From positions 1 to 64,000 of IMG/VR virus record IMGVR_UViG_3300020202_000061: a stretch of 64,000 bases of DNA. One strand, given 5' to 3'. The notes below the pieces were generated by a model. The model was not told the origin of the DNA. It searched no databases and saw only the letters and a list, made by a program, of their open reading frames with translations. Shown here piece after piece: positions 593 to 38,585 of the stretch (positions within the stretch are counted from its first letter, which is position 1; each line of letters begins with the position of its first letter). The position numbers and the translations under genes were made by a program.

Positions 593-1156
593 TTAGCCTT
601 TTGGATCAGGCCGTTTGCCATTCCAGAAATAAGGCATCGCCGCCTCCACACGGGATTCGATGATTTCATCGGGTTCCGCGCCCCTCAGGAGCCCCATCAG
701 GACCTTCAAGGGAGTTTCGTGCCGAACCACCAGGACAGACTGGTTCCGGTCTAGAGCGGGCCACAGCGTGCTTCTGGCCCAGGTCTGGATGCGATCTTCC
801 AGGTCCTGGTAGGATTCGCCACCGGGAGGGCACCGGAAATAATCACGTTCCCACAGCTTGTAGCGTTTCGGAGGCAGTTCCTGACGGATTTCCTCCCAGA
901 GACGCCCCTCGATGGCTCCGCCCCGGCGCTCGTCCAGGGCGTGCGTGATAATGACATCCTCTCGGAACAGACGGGCCGCGCAGATTGCCGCCTCACTCCG
1001 ACCGCAATAAATCACATCCCATTGACGGTCTCGAATCTCCACCCCACCCTCTCGAAGCCGTTCATAACCCCGAGCGGTCATAATATCGGTGTGGGCACCG
1101 GGCATCTTGGCATCGGCTTCGGCATGGGTCTGACCCACCCTCATCATGACTAACAT
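593..1156 (-). CDS. Histidine phosphatase (phosphoglycerate mutase-like) family protein with degenerate RHG motif
   Basis: MMRVGQT at the RHG position, LDER, PPGGESYQDLEDRI, VLVVRH. Confidence 0.7.
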   Translation of the reverse strand: MLVMMRVGQTHAEADAKMPGAHTDIMTARGYERLREGGVEIRDRQWDVIYCGRSEAAICAARLFREDVIITHALDERRGGAIEGRLWEEIRQELPPKRYKLWERDYFRCPPGGESYQDLEDRIQTWARSTLWPALDRNQSVLVVRHETPLKVLMGLLRGAEPDEIIESRVEAAMPYFWNGKRPDPKG

Positions 1157-1944: not shown

Positions 1945-4308
1945 TTAGAAGGGGAACTGATCACCCGTGTTCAGGACGGTGATCGGCACGTAGATGAATT
2001 CGATGGCCTTGGCGGGCTTAATCGCCACGTCCACCCACAACTCATAACGGTCGATACGGTCAGCCGTGTTGTTGGATTCGTCGCAACGCACCGCGTAGTC
2101 GTAGAGAGCACGGAGCGACTTCAACCCGGCCAGATAACGCTCGGTCACAACCTGAGCAGAACGGCGAGTTACGGCGTCGTTGATCTCGAACAGGAACGGC
2201 TCCAGCAGACGCTGCAAGTCGTACTTCATCTTCGCAATCAAACGCGCCACGTTCACACGATCCAGAGCACTGGCAATGGCCGAGTTCGTCTTCTGACCGA
2301 AGATCACCAGACCACGGTTCGGAATGAACGTGATCGGGTTCACACGGTTCTGATAGGCGATATCACGCATGGAGCGGGTCATGATCAGCGGGATGTAATC
2401 ACCGTCGTTGTCGAGGTAACCCACGCTGGTCGCATTGTCCACACGACCACGAGTGTAACCGGCGGGCGGGAACCACGGAGCGGCCACGCTGTCGGAGTAG
2501 CTGATCGCACGCATCACCATATGGCTGGGCGGTGCGAACACATCCTGTCCGTCCGTAACGTTCGTGGTCAGGCACCAGGGGTACCAGAAACCCGCATACG
2601 GAGTCGGAGCCCGGCTGAAGCCCTGCTCACCAGTCGCCGCGACATTGTTGGCGTTGCTCATCCACTCCCGCACGGTCACTTCACGACCCACCGGGATTCC
2701 CGAGGGGCGCATGAACTTCGGAGTATCCGCGACGATGAACGCGGTCTCGTTGTTGTCCGTGTTCAGTGCGAGCATCTCGTCGTAGAGTTCGGGATAACCC
2801 GGCGCAGCGATAAGCTGGAAGTAGTTCACCTCGTTACGAACCTCTTCGTTCGCGACGATGGCCTTCTGCATACCCTCCACCACCACTTCACGCTGAGCCT
2901 TACGACCGAAGGTCGCTCCGGCAGCGGGCTCCCAGTGATTGTCCGTCTCATCCACCACCACGAAGAAGCCAGCCTCCAGGACCACCTTCTTCGGCGTGTA
3001 GTCGGGGTTGAACTTCTTCACCGTGAAGGTGGTCTTGGACTCACCCAGGTTGAGCCAGAACGTGCCATTGACGACAGCGCTGGCCAGCGGGTCCTGATCC
3101 GTTATCTTGACGTTCCGGGTGATGTCCACCCACGATCCCAGAGTGTACCTCTTAATGATCGGATAGTTGTCGAAGTTCTGCGGATTCCGGATGTCCACCC
3201 AGATCGCACCCTCTGCGGGGAACTGCGGAGCACTGCCCGAGATGACCTTCTGCTCGGCCGTGGGATTGCTCACAGTCGTAGTCAGGATCGGAACCCACTC
3301 GTTGCCACGACCGAAGTCGGTGCCCTCCACATACAGGGCGAAGTCCGTGAACGTGTCGTTGAACCACAGGGTGCCGGTCTCGGGGTCGCTCACCGGCTGA
3401 TTCGGCTGCACCACAACGGCCAGCGGAATGAACCGGGTTCCAGTTCCCACGTAGAGCGGACGCGCTCCAGTGGACGCGATCAGACTGGTATCCTCCCACA
3501 CTGTGTTCTGATTGGGCGTCGGCATGCTGGGCTGACGAATCACAGGCTGGCTCACAAACACACCATCGACGGCACGGAAACGTGCCACCTTCAGGTTGGT
3601 GCCACCACTGGACTGGGTCGTCTTGTACCAGAAATCACCCGTCTGCGGGCTCACCGGAGCGGTGGGCTGAACATGCAGGTTGCAGGTCGAGCCGAAATCC
3701 GCGATCAGATTCGCTGCGGTCGCGGCCTTCCAGGTGCCGCCTTCCTTGTAGCGGATCGTGCCATCGAGATTGGTGTAGTCGAAAGCCCAATCCCCATCAG
3801 CACCGTCCGAGCCGCTGAGCGGCGACGTGGCCACGCGAAATCCCTGCGCAACCCAAGAGGTGCCATTGAACTTGAAGATACCACCGACGACCGCATCCCG
3901 GTCCAACCAGTAGGTGCCATCGGGCGGCGGAAGAACCGGCTCATTGGTGCTCGGCACCAACTCACCCAGATCGACATCCGCACGCAAAATGTAGGCGCGG
4001 TTACCACGGCCCAAGAAGGACCATGCCGCCAACAGACCATACTCGCAAGTCTCGTCCCCGAACACCGGGTCACCCGCGCTCGTCACGAACACCGGGTTAC
4101 CATAGTTCTGGAGCAGTTCACGCTGCGAAGCCACCAGACGAAGCTTGTCCCGCTCGACCGTACCCAGTGCGGTGCCGGTTCCATCCGGCGCGGTCTTGTT
4201 CCGGCGCGTAGCCAGAACCACCAGAGGAATGGTTGTCGGATTCGGGGACCGGTAGATCGACAGGTCCTGCACGAAAACCCGGACGCCAGCGGAAATCAGT
4301 TGAGGCAT
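1945..4308 (-). CDS. Tail sheath protein (T4 gp18-like) with inserted P-x-x-P-x-x-G-x-x-W repeat region
   Basis: N-terminal LISAGVRVFVQDLS; C-terminal PWFPPAGYTRG, YQNRVNPI, IFGQKT, LDRVNVARL, FLFEIND, VRCDESNNT, IKPAKAIEFIY. Confidence 0.95.
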   Translation of the reverse strand: MPQLISAGVRVFVQDLSIYRSPNPTTIPLVVLATRRNKTAPDGTGTALGTVERDKLRLVASQRELLQNYGNPVFVTSAGDPVFGDETCEYGLLAAWSFLGRGNRAYILRADVDLGELVPSTNEPVLPPPDGTYWLDRDAVVGGIFKFNGTSWVAQGFRVATSPLSGSDGADGDWAFDYTNLDGTIRYKEGGTWKAATAANLIADFGSTCNLHVQPTAPVSPQTGDFWYKTTQSSGGTNLKVARFRAVDGVFVSQPVIRQPSMPTPNQNTVWEDTSLIASTGARPLYVGTGTRFIPLAVVVQPNQPVSDPETGTLWFNDTFTDFALYVEGTDFGRGNEWVPILTTTVSNPTAEQKVISGSAPQFPAEGAIWVDIRNPQNFDNYPIIKRYTLGSWVDITRNVKITDQDPLASAVVNGTFWLNLGESKTTFTVKKFNPDYTPKKVVLEAGFFVVVDETDNHWEPAAGATFGRKAQREVVVEGMQKAIVANEEVRNEVNYFQLIAAPGYPELYDEMLALNTDNNETAFIVADTPKFMRPSGIPVGREVTVREWMSNANNVAATGEQGFSRAPTPYAGFWYPWCLTTNVTDGQDVFAPPSHMVMRAISYSDSVAAPWFPPAGYTRGRVDNATSVGYLDNDGDYIPLIMTRSMRDIAYQNRVNPITFIPNRGLVIFGQKTNSAIASALDRVNVARLIAKMKYDLQRLLEPFLFEINDAVTRRSAQVVTERYLAGLKSLRALYDYAVRCDESNNTADRIDRYELWVDVAIKPAKAIEFIYVPITVLNTGDQFPF

Positions 4309-4389: not shown

Positions 4390-4695
4390 TTAGGAAGTGC
4401 CCTGACGAATTAGTCGAAGACGAGCGGGTTTGACAATATTCCAAAACACCCACCACGTATCGTCCGGATCGGGAGGGTCCGTGGTATGATCCGGGTCCAA
4501 GCGCAGACCAGAGACATCTACCTCCCAGATGTCACCGGTTCCATGATTGGGGTCCAATTTGGTGGCCATATACACACCCCCAGCCCGACCCGGCACCAAG
4601 CCTCGACGACGAATCCGTGCACGATTTTCCGATGCCGTGTAGTGATACATCACCGATGGGTGATCAAAACCCTCTTTTAGATCAGTAAGTTTCAT
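4390..4695 (-). CDS. Small ADP-ribosyltransferase-fold (Tpt1/KptA-like) protein with MKLTDLKE leader
   Basis: Start reassigned to ATG 4695 (ATGA overlap with upstream stop); YHYT..RARIRRRGLVP..GVYM..IWEVDV..VKPARL. Confidence 0.55.
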   Translation of the reverse strand: MKLTDLKEGFDHPSVMYHYTASENRARIRRRGLVPGRAGGVYMATKLDPNHGTGDIWEVDVSGLRLDPDHTTDPPDPDDTWWVFWNIVKPARLRLIRQGTS

Positions 4696-5489
4696 CCAAG
4701 GCTCTCGAACACCAGGATATCGTTCTCGTCCGCACGGATAATCAACTCGTCCAGGGTCTGGAACCGGTCGAAGTCCATCCGCTCGTCCAGTTGCTTGATC
4801 GGGACGTGAATCTCGTAAATGTGCTTGGTTTCGTAGACCTTGGCCGGGGGGTTCATCCAGACCGGCTCCAACACGAACGGTAACGTGAACACGTATAGCG
4901 GATTCGCCTCCAACCCGGTGGGCACGGCCTTCTCCATGCGAACCTCGCCCTCGAAACGGATATTCCGCATGAACGTCCAATCAGCCGGACTATTCCGGAG
5001 TTCGATATCGAGGGATGGATTAAATTGAGTACAAAGCTGCTCGACCAATTGGTAACCCTGGTCGTTGTTGGAGGCCCACATCCGAACCTCGACGTTCACG
5101 GTGTATGGGACGGCCATGTGACGTTCCACGGTCTTCTTTTTGCCGGGTTGGTTCACCAAGAGTTCTCCGTCCGGGGTCATGGCGCGTTCGATATAGTTGT
5201 ATTTTTCCCGATGCTGCGGGTTCAGGCGGAGTTCGTCCGACTGTCTGAGACCGGTCATGTAGATGGCCATCACCGGTAGGTAGGCCATGGTGTTGTCGGA
5301 CCCACCGTGCATGATGTAGGCTCCGACCGTTCCCATATCCCCATACTTCACCGGTACGTCCAGGAATCGGGACTTCCCATCACGCTGGATACCGGTCTGG
5401 ACCTGATAACCCCGGAACGCCGCCATCACCTGTACGAGGTAGCGCTTCAACTGGGCATCGTAGAAAAATGGTTTGCGTTTGAGTACCAT
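4692..5489 (-). CDS. Tail sheath stabilizer / tail completion protein (T4 gp15-like)
   Basis: FFYDAQLKRYLVQ, VPVKYGD, VERHMAVPY, QLVEQLCTQFNPSLDI, WMNPPAKV; context next to the sheath gene. Confidence 0.8.
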   Translation of the reverse strand: MVLKRKPFFYDAQLKRYLVQVMAAFRGYQVQTGIQRDGKSRFLDVPVKYGDMGTVGAYIMHGGSDNTMAYLPVMAIYMTGLRQSDELRLNPQHREKYNYIERAMTPDGELLVNQPGKKKTVERHMAVPYTVNVEVRMWASNNDQGYQLVEQLCTQFNPSLDIELRNSPADWTFMRNIRFEGEVRMEKAVPTGLEANPLYVFTLPFVLEPVWMNPPAKVYETKHIYEIHVPIKQLDERMDFDRFQTLDELIIRADENDILVFESLG

Positions 5490-5497
5490 GCGAATAT

Positions 5498-5920
5498 TTA
5501 CTCTCCCCCGATCATAGCCGTCCGGAACTGAGCGAGGAATCGACGCAACAAACGGGGATCAGTGAAGGCAGCGTTCTTTCGAGGCTCTTTCTCGGTGCCG
5601 TATTCGAAATAGACGATCCGATTGAACGGGTTCTGGTCGAGGAACTCCATAGCCATCTGATGCAACTCCTTCAGGGCCGCTCGGGTTACTGTATCGGTCT
5701 GGAACTCCACACCCATTTCCTTGGTGTGCTGGAACACTCTGATCCAACCCCAACGATAGCCCATGGTGTAACTCCAATGTGGTTCTTGCTGGCCTGTGAG
5801 TTCACGAGCACGGTCACGGATCACTTCCCAATGAGCACCATCACGGAAATTACCGTCGTCCATGATCCAGCCAGCACGATTATAGATGTAGCCTTCTCTG
5901 AGAAGTTCGACCAACCTCAT
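5498..5920 (-). CDS. Putative internal head protein, single GWI-H-GWIR domain
   Basis: MRLVELLRE leader; AGWIMDDG..H..GWIRV. Confidence 0.7.
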   Translation of the reverse strand: MRLVELLREGYIYNRAGWIMDDGNFRDGAHWEVIRDRARELTGQQEPHWSYTMGYRWGWIRVFQHTKEMGVEFQTDTVTRAALKELHQMAMEFLDQNPFNRIVYFEYGTEKEPRKNAAFTDPRLLRRFLAQFRTAMIGGE

Positions 5921-7437
5921 CTGCGATGGCTCTCTGCCGCTTTCATCTTCGGACGTGGCACAAATTTACCGCCGATGTATTTCTGTGCATCCTCATCGAA
6001 TGTGTCGAGCCATTCGTTGTAGGCGTCGATCACCCTCTGACTGGGATTGTCAATCTGACGCATCAGCTTGGGATGGTTCTTGACCATGGTGATCAGGATA
6101 TCGTCGGGAATCTGATACTTGAAACGGGTCGAAGCCCTGAGGAGGTATTCGCCGCTCTTCGGAGCCGCAAGCTGCATCGCCTCACGAGTCGGGTGCGGGA
6201 TGTCCAGAATGGTCGAACCCACTCGGGACACTGCGAGCCTCTGGAGTTCCGGCGTCTGATCCTTGACGTGGGCAATCGTCCTGGGCACCCGCTGGACCGC
6301 AACTTTCATGGCCAGCGGGTCCTGATCCTTGATGACCTGAATCAGATCGGGATTCTCCTGTGCCACAAAGCGTTGAACCTCCGGACCCGGATTAACGATC
6401 TGACGGATACTCTCGGGATCAAGATGAACCGCATGCAACTTCAAGTCATCACTGATACCGGGGAACTTCTTGAGAATCTCGACCAGAGCCATGTTTCGAT
6501 GACCATAGCGGGGCTGCGGGGTCATATTCATGGCCAATTCAATCTCATCCTCGGTGGGATTCGAGATGTTAAAGAGGTTCCTCCAGTTCTTTCTGATACC
6601 GTTCTGCCTCATCTCCTCGCTGGGATTCTCGAACATCCAAAGTGCCCCATTGAGTTCGGCTTTCTTGGCGATTTCCGGAATCTTACTGAGCCAACGATAG
6701 TTGTGAGCGAGGCTGAACTTCTGTTGCTCCTCGGCGGGCTCTCCACGGATTGATTTGTACTTGGCCGGGAACGTCGGAATCTCCTTATCATTCTCGTCCA
6801 TGAACTGGTTGCTCTCGAAGTGCATCTGCACCTTTCGCCCGTTCGGGGTCAGGACGATGTAGAGCGGCCCATCTTTGTTGTAATCATTGAAGTGGTTCTG
6901 GCTCTCCGTAGATGCCGTACACCACTGGGTACCACGACCAAGATAGCAGGAGGCTTCCTCCGTGGTCGGCACATACACAGCGCCTTCCGGCCCCCTGTAG
7001 ACGACACGAACCTGCTCCTTCAACTTAGCATCGATCATGGCCTGAATCTGACGCTCACTCGTGGTGTCCACGAGTTCCATCGGCTTGATCACCTTCGTGT
7101 AGAGATCAATCGGTCCCTTGTAGCGGTTGATGTCGCGCTGTGCGGGTTCCAGCTTGGGCTTCAACGCATCGAATCGGCTCAGATAGCTCTTGGTTCGGTC
7201 GATATCCTCGACACGAAAGAGACCACCCAGATATGAACGGATCACCCACTGAGCATACTTTTTGTCCCCGGTCGGGTCCGTACTGATAATCACGTCGAAA
7301 AACGTCTCCGGATGCATGAACGTGCGACTGGGGGAATTACGCTCGTTCTGGACAGCGTGATCCCACAACGCCTGCTGGTAATTCCGGCGAAGGAAATCAA
7401 TGCGATTCTCTAACAGGAGGAATTCCAGTAATCTCAC
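5917..7437 (-). CDS. Putative internal head protein with GTQWCTA domain and C-terminal short helical repeats
   Basis: GTG start, MRLLEFLLLE leader; DPTGDKKYAQW, ASCYLGRGTQWCTA, QFMDEND; ~23 aa repeats (I.NP..E.Q..AV). Confidence 0.75.
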   Translation of the reverse strand: MRLLEFLLLENRIDFLRRNYQQALWDHAVQNERNSPSRTFMHPETFFDVIISTDPTGDKKYAQWVIRSYLGGLFRVEDIDRTKSYLSRFDALKPKLEPAQRDINRYKGPIDLYTKVIKPMELVDTTSERQIQAMIDAKLKEQVRVVYRGPEGAVYVPTTEEASCYLGRGTQWCTASTESQNHFNDYNKDGPLYIVLTPNGRKVQMHFESNQFMDENDKEIPTFPAKYKSIRGEPAEEQQKFSLAHNYRWLSKIPEIAKKAELNGALWMFENPSEEMRQNGIRKNWRNLFNISNPTEDEIELAMNMTPQPRYGHRNMALVEILKKFPGISDDLKLHAVHLDPESIRQIVNPGPEVQRFVAQENPDLIQVIKDQDPLAMKVAVQRVPRTIAHVKDQTPELQRLAVSRVGSTILDIPHPTREAMQLAAPKSGEYLLRASTRFKYQIPDDILITMVKNHPKLMRQIDNPSQRVIDAYNEWLDTFDEDAQKYIGGKFVPRPKMKAAESHRR

Positions 7438-7447
7438 GATAAGTCCC

Positions 7448-9097
7448 TCACATGACGTAATATTTACCCACAGACTGATTCAGGACTTTTTCGAACGCCT
7501 GTTCGAGTTGGTGCTCGAATCGAGCGATGAGTTTGGTGGTGAACTGTTCCGCACCCGGTCTCAGAGTGTGATCCCGGTCCAGACGACGTGGAAGCTGACG
7601 ATTCAGACGGACGCGGCCCGTCATCAGGTACTGGGTGAACCGCTCGTAGACCCACTCCGCATACTGCACGAGCTTTCCCTTACGGGCGGAGTTCATCCGC
7701 CCCAGCATGTGACCGAGGAGCTTCCCGTAGGCCCGGAAATAATCACGACGGAAAATCTCCCGATTCCAACCACTCACCTTGGGCCACTCCACCCCATAAG
7801 CACGCCGGGTTAAGCTCTCGACGAACTTATCGAACATCCCATGGATATTCGGCTCATAACCCTGAGTAAGGACGTGTGCGGTTCGGTGCGCCATCATCCA
7901 GGGCGACCGCATCGGCACATACGCCTCGTCCCGAAGGTTTCCGGTGTGAATGATGTTGATCCGGTTCCGCGCATTATTCAGGCGGGAGATTCTCTGGGCC
8001 ACATCCGGTCCCATACGCTCGCTGATCCAATCCAGCCGGACCTCACCCTTCTGGGTGTGCCAGTCATAGTCGGGATCAGGATTGGCCCAGAAATACAGAT
8101 TGAGGTTCTGTGGAATGCGGGCGAACTTCGTGGCGATCTTCCGGATCACTTCGGGATCACGAATCGCTTTCACATCCCTGTCCGAGAAGTGCTGTTTCTC
8201 ACGCTCGTAGCCGTGCCACTTCCGACGCTGCGTGGCCAGATTCTGTTCCAGATCGGGATCGACCTGGAAGTCACCGAGCGGGGCTTCGTTGAGCTTGGAC
8301 TTGAGCAGATCACGCACAAACGTATTCACGTCCACCTCGCGGTAGAACGATCTACTACCACCCTCGTACTCGTCAATGCGATAGACTTTCTTGGGCGAGT
8401 CCTTGATCAGGATGAGCATCCGGTAAATCGCGAGTCTCGTGACGTTGCGGATGGACCAACCAAAACCCAATCCATCGTCGGTCTCAACCACACGAATCCA
8501 CCCGCTCTTCAGGGCAAGACCACCAGCCATTCCATGCTCGTCCGGATTGTAATGCGGGAAATAGCCCTCCGCCTCTGCTTCATGATTCTCGAACCCGACC
8601 GGGATGAACTCACCTCGGTCAGTAATCCAATAACCATAGTCCGTACCGGGAATCTCAACGGCTTCGGTGATCACCCCACGATAACGCTGATTTAGCCAGC
8701 GCTGGGCCTGTCTGGGGTCGTCAAAGCGGCCCCAATCCTGACCGATCTGGAGCATGATCTTGTAGTCGAACCGATCCTTGATGATCTCGTAGACTTTACG
8801 AACCGCTTCACGGCTCGGTTCCAGACCGAGTTGGAACCCGATCTCACCACCCTCGGTGTAGACGCGGACCCACCCGTTACTGAACCCGTACAGGTAAAAG
8901 TCACTGTCCGGGACAAGATTCATCTTATTTTTGATGATATGAGGATCGCGTCCTTCCAGGTCCATATCGGAAACGATCTGATCGTAGAACGCCTCCTGCA
9001 TGATCTGGGTATGACCACCCTCGTGGTAGACCCCATCGGCGTCGATCCAGCCATAGTAGTAGAGATGAGATTCGAGGAGCAGGTCGATCAACTTCAT
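7448..9097 (-). CDS. Putative internal head polyprotein: 2x GWI-H-GWIR domain + HRxxH domain
   Basis: MKLIDLLLE leader (ATG 9097 or GTG 9100); modules linked by VITE and KLNE; PWMMAHRTAH. Confidence 0.75.
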   Translation of the reverse strand: MKLIDLLLESHLYYYGWIDADGVYHEGGHTQIMQEAFYDQIVSDMDLEGRDPHIIKNKMNLVPDSDFYLYGFSNGWVRVYTEGGEIGFQLGLEPSREAVRKVYEIIKDRFDYKIMLQIGQDWGRFDDPRQAQRWLNQRYRGVITEAVEIPGTDYGYWITDRGEFIPVGFENHEAEAEGYFPHYNPDEHGMAGGLALKSGWIRVVETDDGLGFGWSIRNVTRLAIYRMLILIKDSPKKVYRIDEYEGGSRSFYREVDVNTFVRDLLKSKLNEAPLGDFQVDPDLEQNLATQRRKWHGYEREKQHFSDRDVKAIRDPEVIRKIATKFARIPQNLNLYFWANPDPDYDWHTQKGEVRLDWISERMGPDVAQRISRLNNARNRINIIHTGNLRDEAYVPMRSPWMMAHRTAHVLTQGYEPNIHGMFDKFVESLTRRAYGVEWPKVSGWNREIFRRDYFRAYGKLLGHMLGRMNSARKGKLVQYAEWVYERFTQYLMTGRVRLNRQLPRRLDRDHTLRPGAEQFTTKLIARFEHQLEQAFEKVLNQSVGKYYVM

Positions 9098-10398
9098 CAC
9101 ATCACCATGATCTTGCCTACGGAACTCTCCATGAGATGGCCGAGTTCGTGATTGATGATCTTCTCGAACAGTTTGACGGAGCGGTTCAACTCCTGGACGC
9201 TACCCTCCAGGACGGCGTCGTCGTAGTGGTATTCCCCAGATTCATTCGGACGCCCCCAGGGGAGTTCCGAGGGGAGATTCGCGTTGAATACGGTTCGACC
9301 CAGCAGCATATACTGGGTGACGGCCTCCACCAGGAATTCACCGGGGTTGTTCAGGTTGCCATCGCGTGCGGCACGGGTGGTTCCCAGAACGTGGCAGATC
9401 GCCCGCACATAGGTGTTGCGGTACCAGGGACTGGCAAAGTCCTTCAGAGCCTCGGGATGTGCTTCCGCATCCAAATGATACTGCTTCAGGGTTTCCTCCA
9501 GGAACTCTCTGAACATCCCTGAAATTTTCCCACCCTGTGTGGTCATCAACAGGACGTGGGCGATACGGTGAGCGACCATCCAGGGCGAACGCAGGCTGAC
9601 AAATCCAACATCCGTCGCCAAGTTGTTCGCGATCACGATGGTGATCGACTGCTTCTGATCGGGCATCCGGAGGACACGACGAGCCGCGTCCGGACCGATA
9701 TGCAGACCGAGATTCCGAGGCCGTACCACACCCAGGAGAAGATTGCCGGGTCCACGCGTCTCCTCCGTGTTGGGATGACCCTCACTGGTCCAGAAATACA
9801 GATTGATCTTCTGTGGCACTTTAAGGAAGCGCCGCTCGATCTTCTTCAGCACGCCAGGATCATTCAGAGCCTTGACATCGACTGGTCGATAATCCGGGCG
9901 GAACTTCTCCTTCGGGCCGGTCCAGGTCTGCTGCTGGATCAGGTTGTTCGCGTTGAAATCGGGGTCTACCTGCATCGCATTGATCGGGGCCTCCGCCACC
10001 ATCCGAGTGGGACTCTTCATGAACTCGCGGATGAACGCGTTGGCCTTGCCGATGTCGGTGAAATCTCCATACCTGTCCTGCCCAGTGGTCCGTTCCGCAT
10101 CCACTCCGATCTCGTCCGGGTCCATCGTCCTGATGAGTTCGAGCACCGCATAGAGTGCACGATTCGTCACGGTCTCGATCAGGAAGTCGATCTCCAACCG
10201 GGTGTAACTCTGAACCACACGAACCCAACCCTTCCTCAGGGCCGCAACACGTCCCGCCACGGGCGAACCCTGGAAGCGGACGTTTGCCTCGTAATCGTGC
10301 TCCTGGAAGCCCACGTTGATGAACTCACCCTGATCGGTGATCCAGTAGCCGTAATCGGTCTCGGGGATGGCCCCCTCTAGGAGTTGGAGCAGTCTCAT
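9097..10398 (-). CDS. Putative internal head polyprotein: GWI-H-GWIR domain + HRxxH domain
   Basis: MRLLQLLE leader; YGYWITDQG..H..GWVRV; MVAE linker; PWMVAHRIAH. Confidence 0.75.
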   Translation of the reverse strand: MRLLQLLEGAIPETDYGYWITDQGEFINVGFQEHDYEANVRFQGSPVAGRVAALRKGWVRVVQSYTRLEIDFLIETVTNRALYAVLELIRTMDPDEIGVDAERTTGQDRYGDFTDIGKANAFIREFMKSPTRMVAEAPINAMQVDPDFNANNLIQQQTWTGPKEKFRPDYRPVDVKALNDPGVLKKIERRFLKVPQKINLYFWTSEGHPNTEETRGPGNLLLGVVRPRNLGLHIGPDAARRVLRMPDQKQSITIVIANNLATDVGFVSLRSPWMVAHRIAHVLLMTTQGGKISGMFREFLEETLKQYHLDAEAHPEALKDFASPWYRNTYVRAICHVLGTTRAARDGNLNNPGEFLVEAVTQYMLLGRTVFNANLPSELPWGRPNESGEYHYDDAVLEGSVQELNRSVKLFEKIINHELGHLMESSVGKIMVM

Positions 10399-11597
10399 AC
10401 GCGTGCCTCCGGCCGGAGCTTCATCAGGTCACGAACGAACGCGTTGGCCTCGGCCTCACCATCGAATCTATGCGTGGGCGGGGTAGCCCCGAGCAGATCA
10501 AAAGTGACGCGGATGGGTTCGGGCCAGGGGTCACTCTGCTTGATCAGTTTCAATACCCCATAGAGGGCAAGCTTCCGCACACTCCTTGGGTTCAGATCGA
10601 AGTCCAGATAGCGCGGTTCCGTCACGACCCTGATCCACCCCGCCTTGTAGGCGCGGACGATCCGATTCAGACCCTCACCCTTAGGGAAATACTGATCCGA
10701 GACGACCTGATGGAACTGACCGCGCACCGGAATGAATTTGCCCTCGGCGGTGATCCAGTAGCCGTAGGAGGTGAACGGGATTTCCTCCTCGGTGATCTGA
10801 CCCTTCAGGAGGGCGCGAATAGCCTGGGTGAGCTTCTGACGGGTCATTTCCCCACCCGCTTTTCCAGTCTCCAGATAGCAATTATTGGTCTCGGCGTTCT
10901 TGATTAGCGCTAGAAGACTTTTCAACGCGTCTTTTGTGGCGTATCTGGGATCGAGTTCGACATCAAATTCATGTCCGTTATCGATGACTCTGATCCACCC
11001 TGAACGCTTCGCCACACCTGTGCCATCCGTAAGCTTCTCCATAGGGATGCCAAAGGCTTTACGTGCGTCTCTTTCATGTTGTTCATGTGCGACTGCATGC
11101 ACCTTACCCTGCGCGTCGATCCAATACCCATACGGAGACCAATCGTGGTTTTCCGCCACCATCTGGGGTCGCCGCTTCCCGAGGAGGAAACGCATGAAAT
11201 ACTTGGTGAGTTCTTGCTTGGTCGGGTAGTGCCGACGCTTGAACTTGGGCTGGTCGTAGGCGAACCGCACATCGAACGCGATCTGGTTGTCGTCGTGAAT
11301 CTGATGGATGTAGGGGAGCACCGCACGCAGCGCCTCGGCCGTGCACGTCTTGGGATCGCGCACCGCGATGCTCACGCCGTTACGGTCGATGATCCTGATC
11401 CAGCCCAGACGGTATGCCTGTTCGTAACCGGTAATTCCGGGTGTGGTTATCTCCTCCGGATGCCTCTGAAAATACCTGTGAGCAACCATCGCATGGCTCT
11501 CGTAGGGCACCTCCAGATACTCACCATGATGGGTGATCCAGTAACCGTATTCGGTATCGGGGATGTTGGCCTCAATCAGGAGGTCGAGCAGTCTCAT
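10395..11597 (-). CDS. Putative internal head polyprotein: 3x GWI-H-GWIR domain
   Basis: Start reassigned to ATG 11597 (MRLLDLLIE, ATGA overlap); three YGYWI modules linked by MVAE and QITE. Confidence 0.75.
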   Translation of the reverse strand: MRLLDLLIEANIPDTEYGYWITHHGEYLEVPYESHAMVAHRYFQRHPEEITTPGITGYEQAYRLGWIRIIDRNGVSIAVRDPKTCTAEALRAVLPYIHQIHDDNQIAFDVRFAYDQPKFKRRHYPTKQELTKYFMRFLLGKRRPQMVAENHDWSPYGYWIDAQGKVHAVAHEQHERDARKAFGIPMEKLTDGTGVAKRSGWIRVIDNGHEFDVELDPRYATKDALKSLLALIKNAETNNCYLETGKAGGEMTRQKLTQAIRALLKGQITEEEIPFTSYGYWITAEGKFIPVRGQFHQVVSDQYFPKGEGLNRIVRAYKAGWIRVVTEPRYLDFDLNPRSVRKLALYGVLKLIKQSDPWPEPIRVTFDLLGATPPTHRFDGEAEANAFVRDLMKLRPEARV

Positions 11598-12910
11598 GCC
11601 GCTTTCCCCCTCTGACGGTTCGCCTTGTAGAGTTCCCGGAAATACTGATAGAGTTGGTTCTTGGTCGGGTAGCTTCCCCATGGGGGCAACTTGAAACCAC
11701 GTCCTATATCGAAAATGATCGTGTGGGGATCACGCCGATCATCCACCCCACGAATGAAGGGGAGGATTGCGCGGGCTGCGGCCGGTGCAACATCTCTGGG
11801 GTCCAGGATCGACACGTGCACGTAATCGTTGGGATCATTCGGGTCGATGATCCTGATCCAGCCCTTCTTGTAGGCGGTCTCGAACACCCCAAGCTCTCGG
11901 GTATTGCCCTCATGGGGATTCTGTTCGAACCACTGCTGCGCCGTCCAATGATGGGCCTCGTCGTCCACCTGGAGATACTCCCCGGTGTGGGTGATCCAGT
12001 AGCCATAGTAGGTGCCGGGGATATCCACGGCCTCCGCCACATTCCTGCGAGAGGTGGAGAAGAACAACTTCTTGAAAAACTGCATGACCTCGGCCTTCTC
12101 CGGTCGATGCGGCTTTGTGAAATTCAGACTCGTGTGCGGATCGTACACGTCCAGGTAGATCGTGGTGGCATCGGTCTGGGCGAGATAGCCCAGAACCGTA
12201 TTCAGGGCTTCGCGGGTGAGCTTCTTCGGGTCTTCCACGCTGATGTGGATGACGTGCTCCAGATTGCCTCCGGCACGAACCGTATACTTCTGCTGGTCCA
12301 CGATCCTGATCCAACCACGTTCATAAGCCGTGGTGATTGTGTGATCGTAGGTGAGGTGGCTGTAATCGATTCCTAGATGACGGGCCGCGACCGCACCATG
12401 AGCCTCAGCCGGAACCGGAATCATTCTGCCCCGGTCGGTGATCCAGTAGCCATAGTCGGTCTCGGGAATCTCCATCTCCATCAGGGTGGATTCCCTGACA
12501 ATCTGACGCCGCATCTGATTGAGCCAGCGTAGTGCCCGCCTAGCGTCTGGGAACTCGTCGTAGGTGTTGTTGAGTTGAATCCCGATTAGGCGACCGTCCA
12601 CGATGTCCTTGATCAGTCTCTTCATGCCCCGGAGCGCATTCTTGGTGGTGTTGCGACTGACCTCGAATGCCACCTCACGATTGGACGAACTCACCCTGAT
12701 CCAACCCGCTTTGAACGCGTATCCGTAGTGCTCGGCTTCGACCAAGTCGTATACCGACTGGCCCTTCTGGAGCGGCCCATGATCGCGCAGAATATCATCG
12801 GCGAAGTATTCGGACACGATTATCTCATGACTTCCCGATAGGAACTTGCCCTCGGACGTGATCCATCCGTAGATGGTTTGGGATTCGGTGAGGAAGTCGA
12901 GCAGTCTCAT
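11594..12910 (-). CDS. Putative internal head polyprotein: 3x GWI-H-GWIR domain
   Basis: MRLLDFLTE leader; three modules linked by IVRE/TLME and NVAE. Confidence 0.75.
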   Translation of the reverse strand: MRLLDFLTESQTIYGWITSEGKFLSGSHEIIVSEYFADDILRDHGPLQKGQSVYDLVEAEHYGYAFKAGWIRVSSSNREVAFEVSRNTTKNALRGMKRLIKDIVDGRLIGIQLNNTYDEFPDARRALRWLNQMRRQIVRESTLMEMEIPETDYGYWITDRGRMIPVPAEAHGAVAARHLGIDYSHLTYDHTITTAYERGWIRIVDQQKYTVRAGGNLEHVIHISVEDPKKLTREALNTVLGYLAQTDATTIYLDVYDPHTSLNFTKPHRPEKAEVMQFFKKLFFSTSRRNVAEAVDIPGTYYGYWITHTGEYLQVDDEAHHWTAQQWFEQNPHEGNTRELGVFETAYKKGWIRIIDPNDPNDYVHVSILDPRDVAPAAARAILPFIRGVDDRRDPHTIIFDIGRGFKLPPWGSYPTKNQLYQYFRELYKANRQRGKAA

Positions 12911-15033
12911 TGCCGATCCCTCACGAAAGCCACACCACGAATTCCGTTCCAGGCCCCGGACATCCGGTAACGACCATCATCCTTAAGGAGTTCGAAACGA
13001 TATCCCTGAGGGGTCCACCCCGCGTAGTTTTTCGCGTTGAATTCGTTGCGCTTGGCATCCTCCCCGTTGATCTCCAACACGGCGGGTTTCACGCGCTGGA
13101 TGAACTCCAGGGTGATTCGCTTGAGCATCTCCGTGATCTTCGGGAACAGTCCGGTCCCACCCTGGGGACGCTTCCCAATCACACGCCAGACCCTGAAATA
13201 ATGATCATCCGGATCGAACGGACCGCGCAGGAACCGGGCCTCAAAATCGTACGGACCGATCCGGAACTGAGCAGTGTTCTGGTCCTCCCAGTAGTAGCGA
13301 TCCTGAACGGGCTGATCCTCCAGCAGTCTGGGCTGATGATACCTGAAGAAGTAAATCCGATATTCCGGATAGGCACGACGCAACACCTTATGGACGTAAT
13401 CCAGACGGTGCTCGTCCATCGGGCGTCGATCATCCGGATCGCGAATGCTGATCATCTTTCGTCGATCATCAATACGACCCACGGCCAGGGCGTTCCCTGC
13501 CTCATCCGGATTGTGCATGGACCGGGACACACCCTGATCCTTCACGGTCTTCAATTTCCCACCCGGCATCACATAGAACATCAACCCACCCCTGTGATGA
13601 CCGATGTCGAAATAGTGGAGACGCTCGTCCTCCATGATCTGCCTGATCTCACTCGCGCCTTTTCCGAAGTACCAAATCTCATACTCCGGGTATTGCTGAC
13701 GAAGCTTCTTCGCGGCGAACTCGATGGTGCGCTCGGGCAGATCGAAGTAGGAGTTTCCCGGAGCCAATGGGGTGCGGATGCTGATCTTCTTTCGGAGATC
13801 ATCGATACGTCCCACCGCGAGGGTATTCTCCTCGATCTCGGGATTGTGGTTCATCAACCCATCACGCTCATCACTGACAGACTCGAAGTCTTCAGGGGTG
13901 GCACCGACCATCATGTAGCCGACATCATCGACGATGAGCTTTCCACCCTTCAGGAGGTACCAGAGTTTGGCCCCACGGTAGTGGCCGATCTCCTGGTAGT
14001 TATCCCAGGATTCGTGGATCACATCCCGCTGGGGATTGAACCCGCTCTGAATGGCCCGCTTGATCTGGTTCGGATAGAACGCGAGCCAGACAGTTTCAGA
14101 CCCACCTGAAGAATTGTTCTCTTCGAACATAACCCCATCGAAGCCCGCAGCTTTAATGGCCTGGACGAACCATTCGCCTTCCTTATCGTCGAAAAACTCC
14201 CAGGTGTTCTGGGGATTGCCAATGTAATTCTCCATCCAATCCATATCCACGCCTTGGGCGGCAAGCTTCTGGACATCCTTCCAATAGATGCCAGCCTCGT
14301 AAGTAATTCTCAATGGATTCTGGATGCTCAGATAGACCGGGATCACTCCACCCTTGCCACGATGTCTGGGTTGGTTCACAAATTCCCTGGCGAACGCTTC
14401 GTTCTCGGCGAAGTAAAATCCGTGGCGCTGCACCTCCACGGGAATACCCATGAACGTGGTGAATCCTTTACGATTCTCAAACTTATCGAAGAGCGGGCTC
14501 GGGGTGCCATGGAACACCACTAGGGGATTTCCCTGCTGGTCCACGACCTTGCTCTGCTTGAACCACGCACGAAATTGGGGGCTCTGGATAAGTGAAGGCT
14601 GTACATCTTCACGAAGGCTGCTCTTGAATTTTTCAAGCGCCTCATGACCGCGAATCTTCGAGATGATTTTGACCTGACGGGGATCGAACGCGACATACTC
14701 TTGCTGACCATTCGGATATTGGCCAATCATGCTGTCATACCCGGCCGCTTCCAATTCGTCACGGCGCTTCGGACTGACCGACTGGAACGTCTTGGCATCG
14801 GTCCGGTGATAGGGATTCTGAAATAGGAGTTCGGCCTGGATCACGATGGGCTCATCCCCATCGACTTCCGAATCCATCATAGCGTAATCCAACGCGTCCT
14901 TGAAGGACGGACTGAAATAGGCTCCCACGCCGAATGCTCCGCCTTGTCGGCGAAACTCATCCTTATCGATGGCCGTGCCATGATAGCCCACAAGCGGTGT
15001 GATGTTGGTTTCGAGCAGGTCTAGGAGCCTCAT
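12907..15033 (-). CDS. Polyvalent protein: 2x ADP-ribosyltransferase (ART-PolyVal-like) + 2x IGH domain + C-terminal domain
   Basis: MRLLDLLE leader; GYHGT..GVGAYFS..AGYDSM..EYVAFDPRQVK and FRAWFKQSKVVDQQGNPLVVFHGT..GFYFA..AGFDGV..AFYPNQIK; duplicated IGH..GGKL..HNP..LAVGRIDD..ISIR. Confidence 0.75.
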   Translation of the reverse strand: MRLLDLLETNITPLVGYHGTAIDKDEFRRQGGAFGVGAYFSPSFKDALDYAMMDSEVDGDEPIVIQAELLFQNPYHRTDAKTFQSVSPKRRDELEAAGYDSMIGQYPNGQQEYVAFDPRQVKIISKIRGHEALEKFKSSLREDVQPSLIQSPQFRAWFKQSKVVDQQGNPLVVFHGTPSPLFDKFENRKGFTTFMGIPVEVQRHGFYFAENEAFAREFVNQPRHRGKGGVIPVYLSIQNPLRITYEAGIYWKDVQKLAAQGVDMDWMENYIGNPQNTWEFFDDKEGEWFVQAIKAAGFDGVMFEENNSSGGSETVWLAFYPNQIKRAIQSGFNPQRDVIHESWDNYQEIGHYRGAKLWYLLKGGKLIVDDVGYMMVGATPEDFESVSDERDGLMNHNPEIEENTLAVGRIDDLRKKISIRTPLAPGNSYFDLPERTIEFAAKKLRQQYPEYEIWYFGKGASEIRQIMEDERLHYFDIGHHRGGLMFYVMPGGKLKTVKDQGVSRSMHNPDEAGNALAVGRIDDRRKMISIRDPDDRRPMDEHRLDYVHKVLRRAYPEYRIYFFRYHQPRLLEDQPVQDRYYWEDQNTAQFRIGPYDFEARFLRGPFDPDDHYFRVWRVIGKRPQGGTGLFPKITEMLKRITLEFIQRVKPAVLEINGEDAKRNEFNAKNYAGWTPQGYRFELLKDDGRYRMSGAWNGIRGVAFVRDRQ

Positions 15034-16178
15034 GTCGTGTGCAGCCCCAGCTTCTTGCGCTCGTCCTCATCCCCGGTCGGATCGGAACGCTTCTCACGGT
15101 CCGTGATCACATCATGGATCGAACGTAGCTCGAACTTGCGCTCGCGATCCTTCTCGGAGCGATCCCGCAGGAAGTCGCGGAACTTGGCGGTCCAGTTGTA
15201 GGGTTGCCACTCACGCTTGTTGTCGATCTCTCGAAGCTTCCACTTCCCACCCTGAAGGCGATAGAGACGATTCGGCACAAAATCGATGCGGAGGAACCAG
15301 TCCCCTTCGATGGCATTGGCCGGGAATGTCGTGCCCTGGGTCACGGGCAGACCATTATCGGGCTTGCCATCGTCGTTCCAACGATACGGCTTTCTCCGAG
15401 GGTGATCCGGGTCGAACCACATGATGGTGGTGTCGTACCACGTGGTGTAGGCGTGCTCGTTTGCGAGCCGCTGGTTCGCCTCGGTCAGTGCCATGTCCTG
15501 AGCCTGGGTCCGGGCTTGTTCGGCCAGAGTCTTTCCGTACTGGTCCTTGCGCTCGAACAGATCGAGGAACTCCTGCTGGTGACGGAGCGGCTTCAGGACC
15601 ACACCCATGATGTGTCTGATCCACATCGGGTCCACCCCGTTCGGTGCCCACGCGTGCTTCCGCACCTCATACCACTTGTTGGCCACTCGACCGTTCTGAT
15701 CGACATCACGGAGGTGGGGCATCTCGATCACGTCGCCCGGAATCAATCGGCGACCGAGTTCGGCCTCCATCGTGTTCACATGGAGTTCCAGCGTGATGAT
15801 GTCGTTGGCCAAGGCCATACCGAACTTGGCGTATTCGAGTTCGAACTGGCTGATCTGGTAGACCCCACGAAGCATGGGGATCACCTCGAAGTCATACTCA
15901 CGGTCGCGGTTCTCACCGAGGATCGTGTCCTGCAACCCCATGAACGCACCGATCCGGGTCGGTTCCTCCACCCGGTTTTTATCATCCACCTTCACGTTCA
16001 GGGCATCGCGATCCTGCGCGAATACCCCCTTCATCCTGTAGACGTTGACCAGGACCCCACCCATGTTGATGTGATCCTTCACGATGTCCCGGATGAACGC
16101 GGAGGTTTTCCGGGGCGCACCACCGTGGGTACCCGCCTCATACAGTTCGAACGGCTTCACCGGAGAAAACTTTGGCAT
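15030..16178 (-). CDS. Neck / head completion protein (T4 gp14-like)
   Basis: LQDTILGENRDREYD, LRGVYQI, KFGM, LGRRLIPGDVIEMPHLRD; adjacent to the gp13-like gene. Confidence 0.75.
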   Translation of the reverse strand: MPKFSPVKPFELYEAGTHGGAPRKTSAFIRDIVKDHINMGGVLVNVYRMKGVFAQDRDALNVKVDDKNRVEEPTRIGAFMGLQDTILGENRDREYDFEVIPMLRGVYQISQFELEYAKFGMALANDIITLELHVNTMEAELGRRLIPGDVIEMPHLRDVDQNGRVANKWYEVRKHAWAPNGVDPMWIRHIMGVVLKPLRHQQEFLDLFERKDQYGKTLAEQARTQAQDMALTEANQRLANEHAYTTWYDTTIMWFDPDHPRRKPYRWNDDGKPDNGLPVTQGTTFPANAIEGDWFLRIDFVPNRLYRLQGGKWKLREIDNKREWQPYNWTAKFRDFLRDRSEKDRERKFELRSIHDVITDREKRSDPTGDEDERKKLGLHTT

Positions 16179-16184
16179 CGGGGG

Positions 16185-17000
16185 TTATCCTCGGATCGGC
16201 AATGGAATCTCGGAGTTGTCCGCGTAGAGTCTCAAATCCTCTTCCAGCTTCTCGCACTCATCCAGGCCGGACTGCTTCAGGGCATCACCCTTCAGGGTGG
16301 TTCCGCCTTGAGCGCCCGGCAGCGATCCGAACAACGAGTACTTCTCACCGAGGTGAATCTTCAGCTTTGCCAGGGTGAATCGTTGGAGCCAGTTATAGGC
16401 TTGGTGATCGTTGAGGAGTTCCTCATACCGCTTCATCACCCAAATCTTCAGCCCGACCGTCTCCTTCACGCGCGGGGTCTGGGTGATGATCAGGGTGTGG
16501 TTCTCGTTGCGGAACCGGAAATGGATGTGGCGGGCGAACAGACGGTCCAAGGTCTCCTGGTACTGCATGAGAAAGTCGTACCGGGCCAAGTCCATCGTCG
16601 CCCCATACTGACCCGCGCCGCCACGGAGCAGGATGTTGGCGGTGGCCGCACCGAACGATTCGAACCGTCCCACACCACCACCGACGCCCCCGAACAATCC
16701 ACGACCACGGAAGATGTACTCGATGTTGTCGATGCGCTCGTTCAACTGATAGACCTGTCGGAGCGGCTCCAGCGTGAGAAACGCATACCGCACGTAGACC
16801 CGTCGAGACCGGGTGACACGATACTGGTTTACGGCCGCCTCGAACGCGATCTGGTAGTCGAGGTCTTCCAGATGGACCGTGATCCGCGCTCCACCCAGTT
16901 GGGTGTTACAGATCAGGAACAGGCGTTCCATCTTCTTTCGGGTTTCCTCGGAGACTTTCTGTCCGAAATCAAGGGGTTCAATCGTGCTAAGGTCGCTCAT
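16185..17000 (-). CDS. Neck protein (T4 gp13-like)
   Basis: Start reassigned to ATG 17000 (GGAG RBS, TAAATA at 17027-32); LGGARITVHL, WLQRFTLAKLKIHLGEKYSLFGSLPGAQGGTTLKGDALK. Confidence 0.85.
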   Translation of the reverse strand: MSDLSTIEPLDFGQKVSEETRKKMERLFLICNTQLGGARITVHLEDLDYQIAFEAAVNQYRVTRSRRVYVRYAFLTLEPLRQVYQLNERIDNIEYIFRGRGLFGGVGGGVGRFESFGAATANILLRGGAGQYGATMDLARYDFLMQYQETLDRLFARHIHFRFRNENHTLIITQTPRVKETVGLKIWVMKRYEELLNDHQAYNWLQRFTLAKLKIHLGEKYSLFGSLPGAQGGTTLKGDALKQSGLDECEKLEEDLRLYADNSEIPLPIRG

Positions 17001-17072
17001 CGGGGTCTCCCCAAGGGGTTTCCCGGTATTTAGGACTTGAATTTGTTTGGGTAATTCCTCATCTCCACAGGG

Positions 17073-17300
17073 ATGAATGAGTTCTTCGATACCCCTTGGA
17101 GCGGCGTTTATTTTGTGGTCCTCGAAGTGGTCACCCTGTGGCACGCCTGGACCTGGGCCAAGTCACAGAACTCGGAGAATTTCTGGGATTTGTTTCTGGG
17201 CAGATTCGCCCTCTGCCAGTTCGCCGCAATGGGCTTCTACCTGATTCTTAACTACTCCACCAAAGTCATGATGGGGTTGCTCAACTGGATGGTTATCTGA
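17073..17300 (+). CDS. Small membrane protein
   Basis: Two hydrophobic segments; coupled to the next ORF. Confidence 0.55.
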   Translation: MNEFFDTPWSGVYFVVLEVVTLWHAWTWAKSQNSENFWDLFLGRFALCQFAAMGFYLILNYSTKVMMGLLNWMVI

Positions 17301-20312: not shown

Positions 20313-20594
20313 ATGACCGCGATTGCTTGGCCCAGCCAGACACCGGCCGAGGACGAATACCGTTGGGAACCGAGGACGCCCGTGCAGCCATGGGCTCCCG
20401 GACCCAATGGTCCTGCGCCGGTCCCGATCAATCCGACTGCTCCGGATTGGCCCACGATCCCAAAGTGGCCGCTTCCTTCCCGACAGGGATGGGAGTGCCC
20501 CCGCTGTGGAACCGTGCACAGCCCGGATACGCGATCCTGCTACTGCTCGACCCGCACCTGGTACACAACGACAACCAACACTAGATGTTTCTGA
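20313..20594 (+). CDS. Pro-rich small protein with zinc ribbon
   Basis: GWECPRCG..SP..CYC. Confidence 0.6.
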   Translation: MTAIAWPSQTPAEDEYRWEPRTPVQPWAPGPNGPAPVPINPTAPDWPTIPKWPLPSRQGWECPRCGTVHSPDTRSCYCSTRTWYTTTTNTRCF

Positions 20595-20607
20595 GGAGAA
20601 ACCAAAC

Positions 20608-38096: not shown

Positions 38097-38585
38097 TTAC
38101 TCGGCGGCCACCTTCAACTGAGGTTTGTCCAGTTTGAGCAGCGAATCGCCGTTGCCAATAGGGATCAGCCTCGGTTTCTCCTCCTCCGGGAGGCGGCGCT
38201 CCAGATCGACCATCAAGATACCGTCCTTGAGATCGGCCGAGACGACCTCGGTGTATTCGGCGAGCTTGAATTTCTGATGGAACGCACGATTGGCGATTCC
38301 ACGATAGACGAACCGCTTCTTCTCGTCGGCCTTCTTGTCGCCCTCGACCGAGAGGCAGTCCTTCACCACGGACACGGTGATGTCGTCTTGGCCAAAACCG
38401 GCCACTGCCATCACAATACGAAACTTCGTGGCGTTGCCGTCCTCATCCGACTCCAGCGCCTCAATATTGTAGGGCGGGTAGGATTGGGCGGTTGAATTGA
38501 GAATGCTGTCGATGTCCCTGAACAAGGTTGAGAACCCCAGGAAACGGGGATCAGTAAACAGGGACGCATACAGATCACGTGCCAT
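38097..38585 (-). CDS. hsp20: Small heat shock protein Hsp20 (IbpA-like)
   Basis: YPPYNIE, MAVAGF, YRGIANRAF, ADLKDGIL, PEEEKPRLI; start at ATG 38585 with GGAGG. Confidence 0.95.
   Translation of the reverse strand: MARDLYASLFTDPRFLGFSTLFRDIDSILNSTAQSYPPYNIEALESDEDGNATKFRIVMAVAGFGQDDITVSVVKDCLSVEGDKKADEKKRFVYRGIANRAFHQKFKLAEYTEVVSADLKDGILMVDLERRLPEEEKPRLIPIGNGDSLLKLDKPQLKVAAE

Follow-up and report, generated by a model that had tools for sequence, protein, structure and literature searches.

A variable array of candidate capsid-cargo polyproteins, with putative prohead-protease sites at the module junctions, in an uncultured T4-like phage

Why should seven neighboring phage genes open with nearly the same short peptide and then encode very different proteins? 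The question is raised by positions 5498-15033 of the first 64 kb (64,000 nucleotides; herein the window) of UViG_3300020202_000061, an IMG/VR contig of 347.5 kb. Seven consecutive minus-strand genes (g1 to g7), whose neighbors overlap by 1 to 4 nt or stand 10 nt apart, are set there between gp13/gp14-like neck genes and gp15-like/sheath genes. An earlier note, made from the letters of this DNA, had placed the array inside a cluster of structural genes and proposed that one leader loads a string of small effectors into the prohead, that the prohead protease frees them as separate proteins and that they are injected with the DNA. The flanking genes agree with the structural setting, and every part of the interpretation that can be tested on sequence came out as predicted. 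We consider it probable that the locus is a hypervariable cargo cassette whose products pass through the whole chain of leader-dependent loading, cutting at the junctions and injection with the DNA.

All seven array genes start with M[RK]L[LIV]x[LF]L..E; the N termini on which the proposal was built are all present, on the minus strand and at the genes to which they had been assigned. A six-frame scan of the window revealed the leader on two further genes, 34600-36537 and 51374-52387, the former absent from the list in the earlier note, which gives nine in total, each with an L-x-E end at residue 8 through 12. The codons for Arg, Leu, and Glu vary among the nine genes and the upstream DNA is unrelated; the leader is therefore conserved as a peptide and not as DNA. 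It precedes five unrelated cargo types: the modules termed A and C, ADP-ribosyltransferase (ART) domains, the PcfJ/DUF4116-like protein g2, and an amidoligase. The leader thus proved independent of its cargo, as the interpretation predicts.

The two outlying genes, both on the minus strand, follow the same plan. The stand-alone gene at 51374-52387 encodes 337 residues, a leader followed by C, and its true start is at 52387; the suggestion that the C domain begins right after the leader Glu was confirmed (MRLKDLTNPLFE/TPLGNF, where the slash marks the putative cut), and its orthologs begin MLLKQFTNPLFE/APLGNF and MRLKNFTNPLFE/APLGNF. The gene at 34600-36537, far from the array, encodes 645 residues with the leader MRLVEFLAPLYE/G.. 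and an Amidoligase_2 domain; judged by its leader, this protein is probably further cargo, perhaps a packaged enzyme.

Leaders of this kind extend well beyond the window. A search of 1.84 billion cluster representatives (clusters at 50% identity) with an A-module profile returned 702 proteins (E <= 1e-3), and the statistics on A homologs given here are based on the best 150 of the 702. Where the first A module is N-terminal, 76 of 100 A-family proteins carry a leader ending in [ILVF]xE, 5 to 16 residues before a conserved Trp. In these 76 leaders P3 is Leu in 53, L/I/V in 72, and F in 4; the commonest length is 8 to 10 residues, and Ala or Ser predominates at P1'. Several, with the sequence MxTFKQFLxE, closely resemble the capsid-targeting sequence (CTS) of T4, MKTYQEFIAE (PMC8442874). 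Among the matches listed for the g2 family, the 116 Met-starting homologs (from 181) have an [ILVMF]xE ending at residues 7 through 12 in 84% of cases, against 11% of interior windows, with the consensus M-[RK]-[IL]-x-[ED]-L-L-L-E. Distant C homologs from unrelated metagenomic phages follow the pattern leader-[ILF]xE/AP[IL] (e.g., MRYSEIME/APIG and MKLSDLIKE/APIA); in one of them, P0006, another domain is followed by VSE/AIND and C. In T4, CTS propeptides of 10 to 19 residues target internal proteins and fused foreign proteins into the core and are then removed (PMC9026906, PMC5694885); an Asp at P1 of the T4 CTS prevents processing and leaves targeting intact (PMC9026906). By its length, position, and ending, the leader described here is very likely a capsid-targeting signal.

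Behind the leader, the array proteins consist of modules, which we delimited by self-comparison and alignment. The two simplest genes are g1 (5498-5920; 140 residues), which has the leader MRLVELLRE and a single A module of the N-terminal subtype, and g2 (5917-7437; 506 residues, GTG start), in which the leader (M)RLLEFLLLE, then N, precedes one large module. The remaining five are longer chains. g3 (7448-9097; 549 residues) has the leader MKLIDLLLE, an A module of the N-terminal subtype, a further A, and C, with junctions at VITE145/AVEIP and KLNE271/APLG; g4 (9097-10398; 433 residues) consists of the leader MRLLQLLE (residues 1 through 8), A (9 through 136), and C (137 through 433), joined at MVAE136/APIN. 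Three A modules follow the leader MRLLDLLIE in g5 (10395-11597; 400 residues; MVAE149/NHD and QITE270/EEIP), which holds just four [ILV]xE, three of them the leader end and both junctions; a longer g5 open reading frame from 11681 was rejected, as metagenome gene calls give 400 residues. Three more A modules follow MRLLDFLTE in g6 (11594-12910; 438 residues; IVRE140/STLME145/MEIP and NVAE293/AVDIP), where the last copy ends ..RQRGKAA and has no motif. The longest, g7 (12907-15033; 708 residues), has the leader MRLLDLLE (1 through 8) and five modules, with limits set from orthologs that have other module orders: ART-PolyVal 1 (9 through 142), ART-PolyVal 2 (143 through 341), X1 (342 through 468), X2 (469 through 572), and Y (573 through 708). 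Its junctions are SLRE142/DVQ, VIHE341/SWD, QIME468/DER, and RLLE572/DQP, with the Glu codons at 14608-14610, 14011-14013, 13630-13632, and 13318-13320 on the minus strand. All 11 junctions named in the earlier note carry [ILV]xE where it had put them.

The boundaries were re-derived from homology, from module rearrangements among orthologs, and from an AlphaFold linker, none of which uses the motif itself; the query modules from the window had nonetheless been cut at the junction Glu. Among leader-bearing homologs, [ILVM]xE lies 6 to 14 residues ahead of the conserved Trp in 64 of 104 internal A copies, the offsets peaking sharply at 11, over a background of 14% per nine-residue window (binomial 9e-29). 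At the C-terminal edge, the motif is present in 50 of 56 A copies with more than 60 residues after them versus 10 of 41 copies at the end of the protein (Fisher 8e-11), and the three terminal A copies in the window have none. This difference between internal and terminal copies indicates that the motif is a feature of junctions and does not belong to the A domain. Within the modules of the nine leader proteins the opposite tendency is seen: shuffling within modules predicts 58.0 ± 6.4 [ILVM]xE, and 42 are observed (P 0.012). No depletion is seen there for the control motif [ILVM]xD (79 observed versus 58 expected), and each of six control proteins of the phage has [ILVM]xE at or above the expected number. 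Selection against stray cleavage sites would have this effect on module interiors.

The AlphaFold model of g4 places one junction in a structural context. Its mean predicted local distance difference test score (pLDDT) is 80, and above 90 for the A domain. The leader and residues 130 through 138 (pLDDT <50), which contain MVAE136/AP, are among the low-confidence stretches, and residues 130 through 138 are the sole such stretch that separates two folded domains. E136 thus lies in a disordered linker. The g7 model, made with five sequences, has a mean pLDDT of 39 and is unusable; its confidence dips at residues 459 through 482, around E468.

Comparison with related phages shows that the junctions are also the points at which the arrays differ. 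Three of them (L009, L010/L011, and L012) have the same locus with the same flanks, and other gene numbers and module orders. Over the four arrays, [ILVM]xE/ is found at 39 of 40 junctions, the exception being AAE/, and whole modules are gained, lost, or swapped exactly at the Glu. The g7 orthologs read L-?-ART2-A-A-X1-Y, L-ART2-A-X1-Y, and L-?-ART2-?-X1-X2-Y. The g4 ortholog L009_4 has no A module, and its leader runs directly into C (MRLIQLLE/APINAMQ versus ...MVAE/APINAMQ in g4). One downstream module can follow varied upstream modules, always after xxE/ (IHE/, LKE/, or AAE/ before SWDNY; LNE/, VTE/, or LTE/ before APLGDF), and polyproteins made of A alone contain two, three, four, or seven copies. 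The payload is thus modular and shuffled, as proposed, and the motif belongs to the junctions and not to the domains, as judged by the contrast between terminal and internal copies, the 39 of 40 junctions, the g4 linker, and the interior depletion. An apparent split of the gene for a 944-residue polyprotein in L011 is an artifact of a run of N. In L098 (3824-5171, plus strand), each of three tandem, overlapping genes has one A module behind its own MxLTFKQFLLE leader; on this evidence they are the unfused counterpart of the polyproteins.

The proposal also calls for a gp21-type prohead protease in the phage. None was found in the window or in the 30 kb on the sheath side, and a scan of IMG/VR with a portal profile returned 80 other phages. 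The head genes lie past the right end of the window, at ~64.8-70.1 kb of the contig, in the order Portal_T4, a 268-residue acidic protein, Peptidase_S77, a scaffold-like protein, and Gp23. The Peptidase_S77 gene (L099:2305-2934, ~3 kb beyond the window) encodes 209 residues that match the T4 gp21 structure 5JBL (E 2e-15) and are 36% identical to T4 gp21; GELxHP and GVSxRG are kept together with their His and Ser, both of which are replaced by Ala in the crystallized inactive T4 gp21. Its neighbor, the scaffold-like protein (354 residues), contains 26 [ILVM]xE versus 10.4 expected from composition, a 2.5-fold excess; T4 gp22, which gp21 degrades, has 21 versus 11.2 expected. Together, the protease gene and the motif-rich scaffold bear this out. 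The major capsid protein (Gp23, 407 residues) has VLME52/N just before its conserved mature N-terminal region, where T4 has FLTE65/A. As gp21 cleaves after L/I-X-E (PMC9026906), these features are consistent with a specificity of the phage S77 protease for L/I/V-x-E. The 268-residue protein between portal and protease (L099:1496-2302, plus strand; contig ~67.8-68.6 kb) is of low complexity and rich in Asp, Glu, Gly, and Met, and its gene stands where gp67 and gp68, both small core proteins, are encoded in T4.

Taken together, these observations suggest the following sequence of events. The array genes would be made late, along with the neck and tail genes, and the leader of 8 to 12 residues (M-R/K-L-x-D/E-L/F-L-x-E) would act in the manner of a CTS, binding each protein to the scaffolding core of the prohead. 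Inside the prohead, the gp21-type S77 serine protease would degrade the scaffold and also cut after the Glu of [L/I/V/M]-x-E, both at the leader end and in the exposed linker after each non-terminal module. One leader could in this way load two to six modules, which would end as separate small proteins retained in the head; at infection the freed modules would exit with the DNA and act early on the host, like T4 Alt and IPI. The motif has been lost from terminal copies, persists where the rest of the leader is gone, and is depleted from module interiors; together these features argue for continuing selection on a cleavable site, and we hold cleavage at the junctions to be reasonably probable.

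The leader and junctions could also be read without cleavage. The proteins might be packaged through the leader and remain intact multi-domain proteins, the junction motif being a fossil of fused leaders or an internal CTS-like segment that binds the core. The tandem single-A genes of L098, each with its own leader, suggest a fusion route for such fossils, the junctions of P0039 and P0025 repeat most of the leader, and packaging without processing is described for certain polyvalent proteins, among them the N4 virion RNA polymerase. Most junctions, however, keep only the [ILVM]xE of the leader (MVAE, QITE, KLNE, VIHE, QIME), and the motif also stands before modules other than A, is lost from terminal copies and is depleted within modules. 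In the g4 model it lies in a disordered, accessible linker, and exposed sites should be cut by an L/I-x-E protease that works in the same compartment; we regard packaging without cutting as unlikely. Several points do weigh against the cleaved-cargo interpretation. T4 internal proteins are described as cut once (PMC8442874), and the release of stable products at several sites has no direct T4 precedent; the junction motif could also derive in part from leader-bearing genes that became fused. In proteins with no T4-like leader, the motif is likewise found near ~38% of the internal A copies, and giant A-containing proteins show a different junction pattern. The A homologs counted are related sequences, so their counts are not independent, and the phage itself is uncultured and seen as metagenome contigs only.

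A second alternative concerns the leader, which might be an amphipathic helix for loading into the neck or tail lumen, for oligomerization, for membrane association, or for turnover, in which case the array would not be head cargo. The position of the array between neck and tail genes, and not beside the head genes, would fit this, as would a leader more Leu-rich than the T4 CTS. Yet its length, its position at Met1, its L-x-E end, and the P1' preference for Ala, Ser, or Gly match those of a CTS, related MxTFKQFLxE leaders come close to MKTYQEFIAE, the cargo includes an ART of a class for which packaging is predicted, and the scaffold of the phage is enriched in the same motif; we find this alternative distinctly improbable. 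Least credible by far is chance, that is, the composition of Leu/Glu-rich linkers combined with motif-led placing of boundaries. [ILV]xE is a short motif, found roughly every 60 residues, and the boundaries in the earlier note had been placed by eye. Against this stand the boundaries re-derived independently of the motif (apart from the query modules cut at the Glu), the observed frequencies of 62 to 89% compared with the 14% background, and the opposite behavior of [ILVM]xD.

What the processed cargo would consist of can be said for few of the modules. g7 is the sole array gene with a recognizable activity, predicted from its two ART-PolyVal domains (Pfam PF18760, E 2.5e-37), which are found in two stretches of g7 and only there; HGT and G[AF]YF motifs can be read in the sequence of each copy. 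ART-PolyVal domains are predicted by Iyer et al. to modify host proteins (PMC5512222). The g2 module matches phrog_17056 (E 8e-33), a viral family, with PcfJ-like and DUF4116/LRV-type repeat look-alikes in the Atlas. The A module (~125 residues; ten copies in g1 and g3 to g6) has an invariant W, G, H, and GW.R (YGYWIT...GWIRV), and the C module (~290 residues; in g3, g4, and the stand-alone gene) an invariant PW..AHRxxH...SAR...E...E...Q. A, C, X, and Y have no above-threshold match in Pfam, PHROGs, or NCBIfam; weak DUF4859 and PheRS_DBD3 matches are confined to the YGYW and GWIR motifs, DUF4859 being the only hint for A. Foldseek against the PDB gave no significant match for A or C. Weak matches of A to tRNA-splicing endonuclease and PD-(D/E)XK-like folds have E > 0.01, and no fold was assigned; C matches only one uncharacterized C homolog in BFVD. 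A zincin-like assignment of C (Atlas, ATLF/M90) was rejected because a PDB profile search and Foldseek were empty and the motif is HRxxH, not HExxH. Searches by tblastn with g4, g5, and a stand-alone A protein found no match in 50,697 GenBank phages.

The A homologs include singletons of 130 to 160 residues as well as much larger proteins, with a maximum of ten copies and a maximum length of 3,974 residues; the module also occurs in proteins of 1,000 to 4,000 residues, one of which has ART-PolyVal. Two variants of the sequence signals occur in the family. Five A-domain proteins (P0022, P0062, P0067, P0105, and P0116) start with MNWYKL, MHWYRL, or MNWFKN in place of an L-x-E leader and have junctions ending ..KQA/..ASxP, which may be a different targeting or processing signal. 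Four leaderless giants (P0015, P0018, P0023, and P0026; 1.3 to 2.3 thousand residues, many A) have junctions of the form [ILVM]-E-[AS]-S (NLEAS, NIEAS, TMEAS), a register different from L-x-E that could mean another protease specificity.

The closest known parallel is the head cargo of T4, for which the points on gp21, CTS, and Alt are drawn jointly from PMC9026906, PMC5694885, PMC3012670, and PMC5512222. T4 IPI, IPII, IPIII, and Alt likewise have a short N-terminal propeptide with an L/I-x-E end before unrelated, fast-evolving cargo; T4 too has a gp21-family protease, a motif-rich scaffold, an ART among the cargo, and a locus that varies between related phages. T4 internal proteins, however, are single proteins cut once, whereas here there are mostly two to six modules with the motif at every junction. 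The leader consensus is MRLLDLLxE rather than MKTYQEFIAE, the ART belongs to the ART-PolyVal (H-Y-D/E) clade (PF18760) and T4 Alt to the R-S-E clade, and the array, unlike the T4 internal-protein genes, lies between the gp14 and gp15 genes. Scans of Pfam, PHROGs, and NCBIfam found no internal-protein or Alt family; as a class, internal proteins are not defined by homology.

There is also overlap with the polyvalent proteins, for which Iyer, Burroughs, Anand, de Souza, and Aravind (2017) have already drawn the analogy with viral polyproteins, with embedded peptidases (PMC5512222). As here, disparate modules are combined in one chain (in g7 two ART, two X, and Y; in g3 and g4 A and C), ART-PolyVal occurs in one or more copies, the context is that of late phage genes (here a neck-tail operon), and packaging of the products and their delivery along with the DNA are predicted. 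T4 Alt, which is processed, enters the head and is injected, and packaging and injection are likewise predicted for the ART of polyvalent proteins (PMC5512222). Unlike in that class, neither a MuF anchor nor an embedded (metallo)peptidase was found by Pfam in the array proteins, and the release proposed here is in trans: the morphogenetic protease would act at conserved L-x-E linkers, and a CTS-type leader would do the loading.

In phiKZ-like phages, a diverged gp21 homolog cuts after Glu in many proteins of the head interior, which are often paralogous and several of which have multiple sites; paralogs with conserved N termini have been noted among the inner-body proteins of phiKZ, 201phi2-1, and SPN3US (PMC5694885). 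The motif there is S/A/G-x-E, with a small P3, whereas P3 is L/I/V/M at 39 of the 40 junctions here, and their propeptides are mostly longer than 100 residues and discarded, compared with leaders of 8 to 12 residues. The present system is not phiKZ-like, because P3 is hydrophobic and not small; the genome, too, is T4-like (Portal_T4, Gp23, gp13, gp15) and not phiKZ-like. RNA-virus polyproteins also yield separate functional proteins from one product cut at short linker motifs. That analogy is operational only, as the cutting proposed here would take place in the assembling capsid of a DNA phage and its products would be cargo, not replication proteins. We found no paper describing cargo polyproteins released by a prohead protease. 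To judge from these comparisons, the array would work like the T4 CTS, internal-protein, and Alt system and overlaps conceptually with the polyvalent proteins; it differs from both in its multi-module chains with the protease motif at every junction, in having no MuF or embedded peptidase that could be found, and in its unnamed module families, of which tblastn showed no copies in cultured phages.

If the junctions are cut, the CTS principle would extend past single small internal proteins and become a general means of loading and releasing multi-module payloads in jumbo phages, and the addition, loss, and exchange of modules at a fixed motif would explain how injected payloads diversify. A, C, X, and Y would become new families of candidate injected effectors. 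The combination of leader, L-x-E linkers, and S77 protease would offer a sequence rule for finding packaged cargo in uncultured phages. More tentatively, and with rather less assurance than for the locus itself, we suggest that cargo polyproteins processed by head proteases may be a widespread, unrecognized delivery route of large phages, with A as the commonest module. On that view the protease specificity of each phage would be legible in its junctions, L-x-E/ in T4-like genomes and [ILVM]-E-[AS]-S in other giant A-containing proteins, and the modules at large would form a big untapped pool of early host-takeover or anti-defence proteins.

The source phage is also represented by a second assembly, a 401-kb ENA contig. 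Its gene content indicates that it is a distant jumbo phage of the T4 superfamily, of 350 to 400 kb: it has gp13-, gp15-, and sheath-family domains, with terminase, UvsX-, and UvsW-like genes near, and its sheath is 38 to 41% identical to those of the jumbo phages PA5oct, Atu_ph07, and Phosso. Megablast of the locus against the 50,697 GenBank phages gave no nucleotide match. The flanking genes are all on the minus strand. Upstream of the array are the gp14-like (15030-16178; its stop overlaps the g7 start) and gp13-like (16185-17144) neck genes, assigned as a pair by phrog_211/phrog_11591, with PF26809 (Phage_T4_gp13) on an ortholog of the latter. Downstream are the genes for the gp15-like tail-sheath stabilizer (4692-5489) and the tail sheath (1945-4308), this flank being assigned by PF16724/PF17482, with phrog_10581 (E 1e-180) for the sheath side. 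The gene for a VWA-domain protein (20323-21315, plus strand) is kept upstream of the neck genes in four of four related phages, and a histidine phosphatase gene (His_Phos_1; 593-1156, minus strand) lies directly downstream of a tube-like gene.

Several further genes deserve mention. The T4 late-promoter consensus TATAAATA occurs as a single copy in the window (38673-38680), with at least one copy in 18 of 100 shuffles, and its presence is therefore uninformative; it lies ~40 nt upstream of an Hsp20 gene (38097-38680, minus strand; phrog_432, E 2e-30). A full-length SbmA/BacA-like inner-membrane transporter, an unusual phage gene, is encoded at 48638-49588 (plus strand; PF05992, E 1.5e-98). Near the terminase, just outside the window, are a ribosomal protein S21 homolog and a protein with a TnsA-like endonuclease N-domain, and a NUMOD3-type protein with a faint Pfam match, likely a homing endonuclease, adjoins the capsid gene (L002:13715-14044, minus strand; L002:15365-15961, plus strand; and L099:5584-6567, plus strand, respectively). 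In a 958-residue protein (28853-31729, plus strand), a short motif is repeated at residues ~25 through 80 and ~375 through 465, and this motif matches the N termini of ten PHROG families of unknown function.

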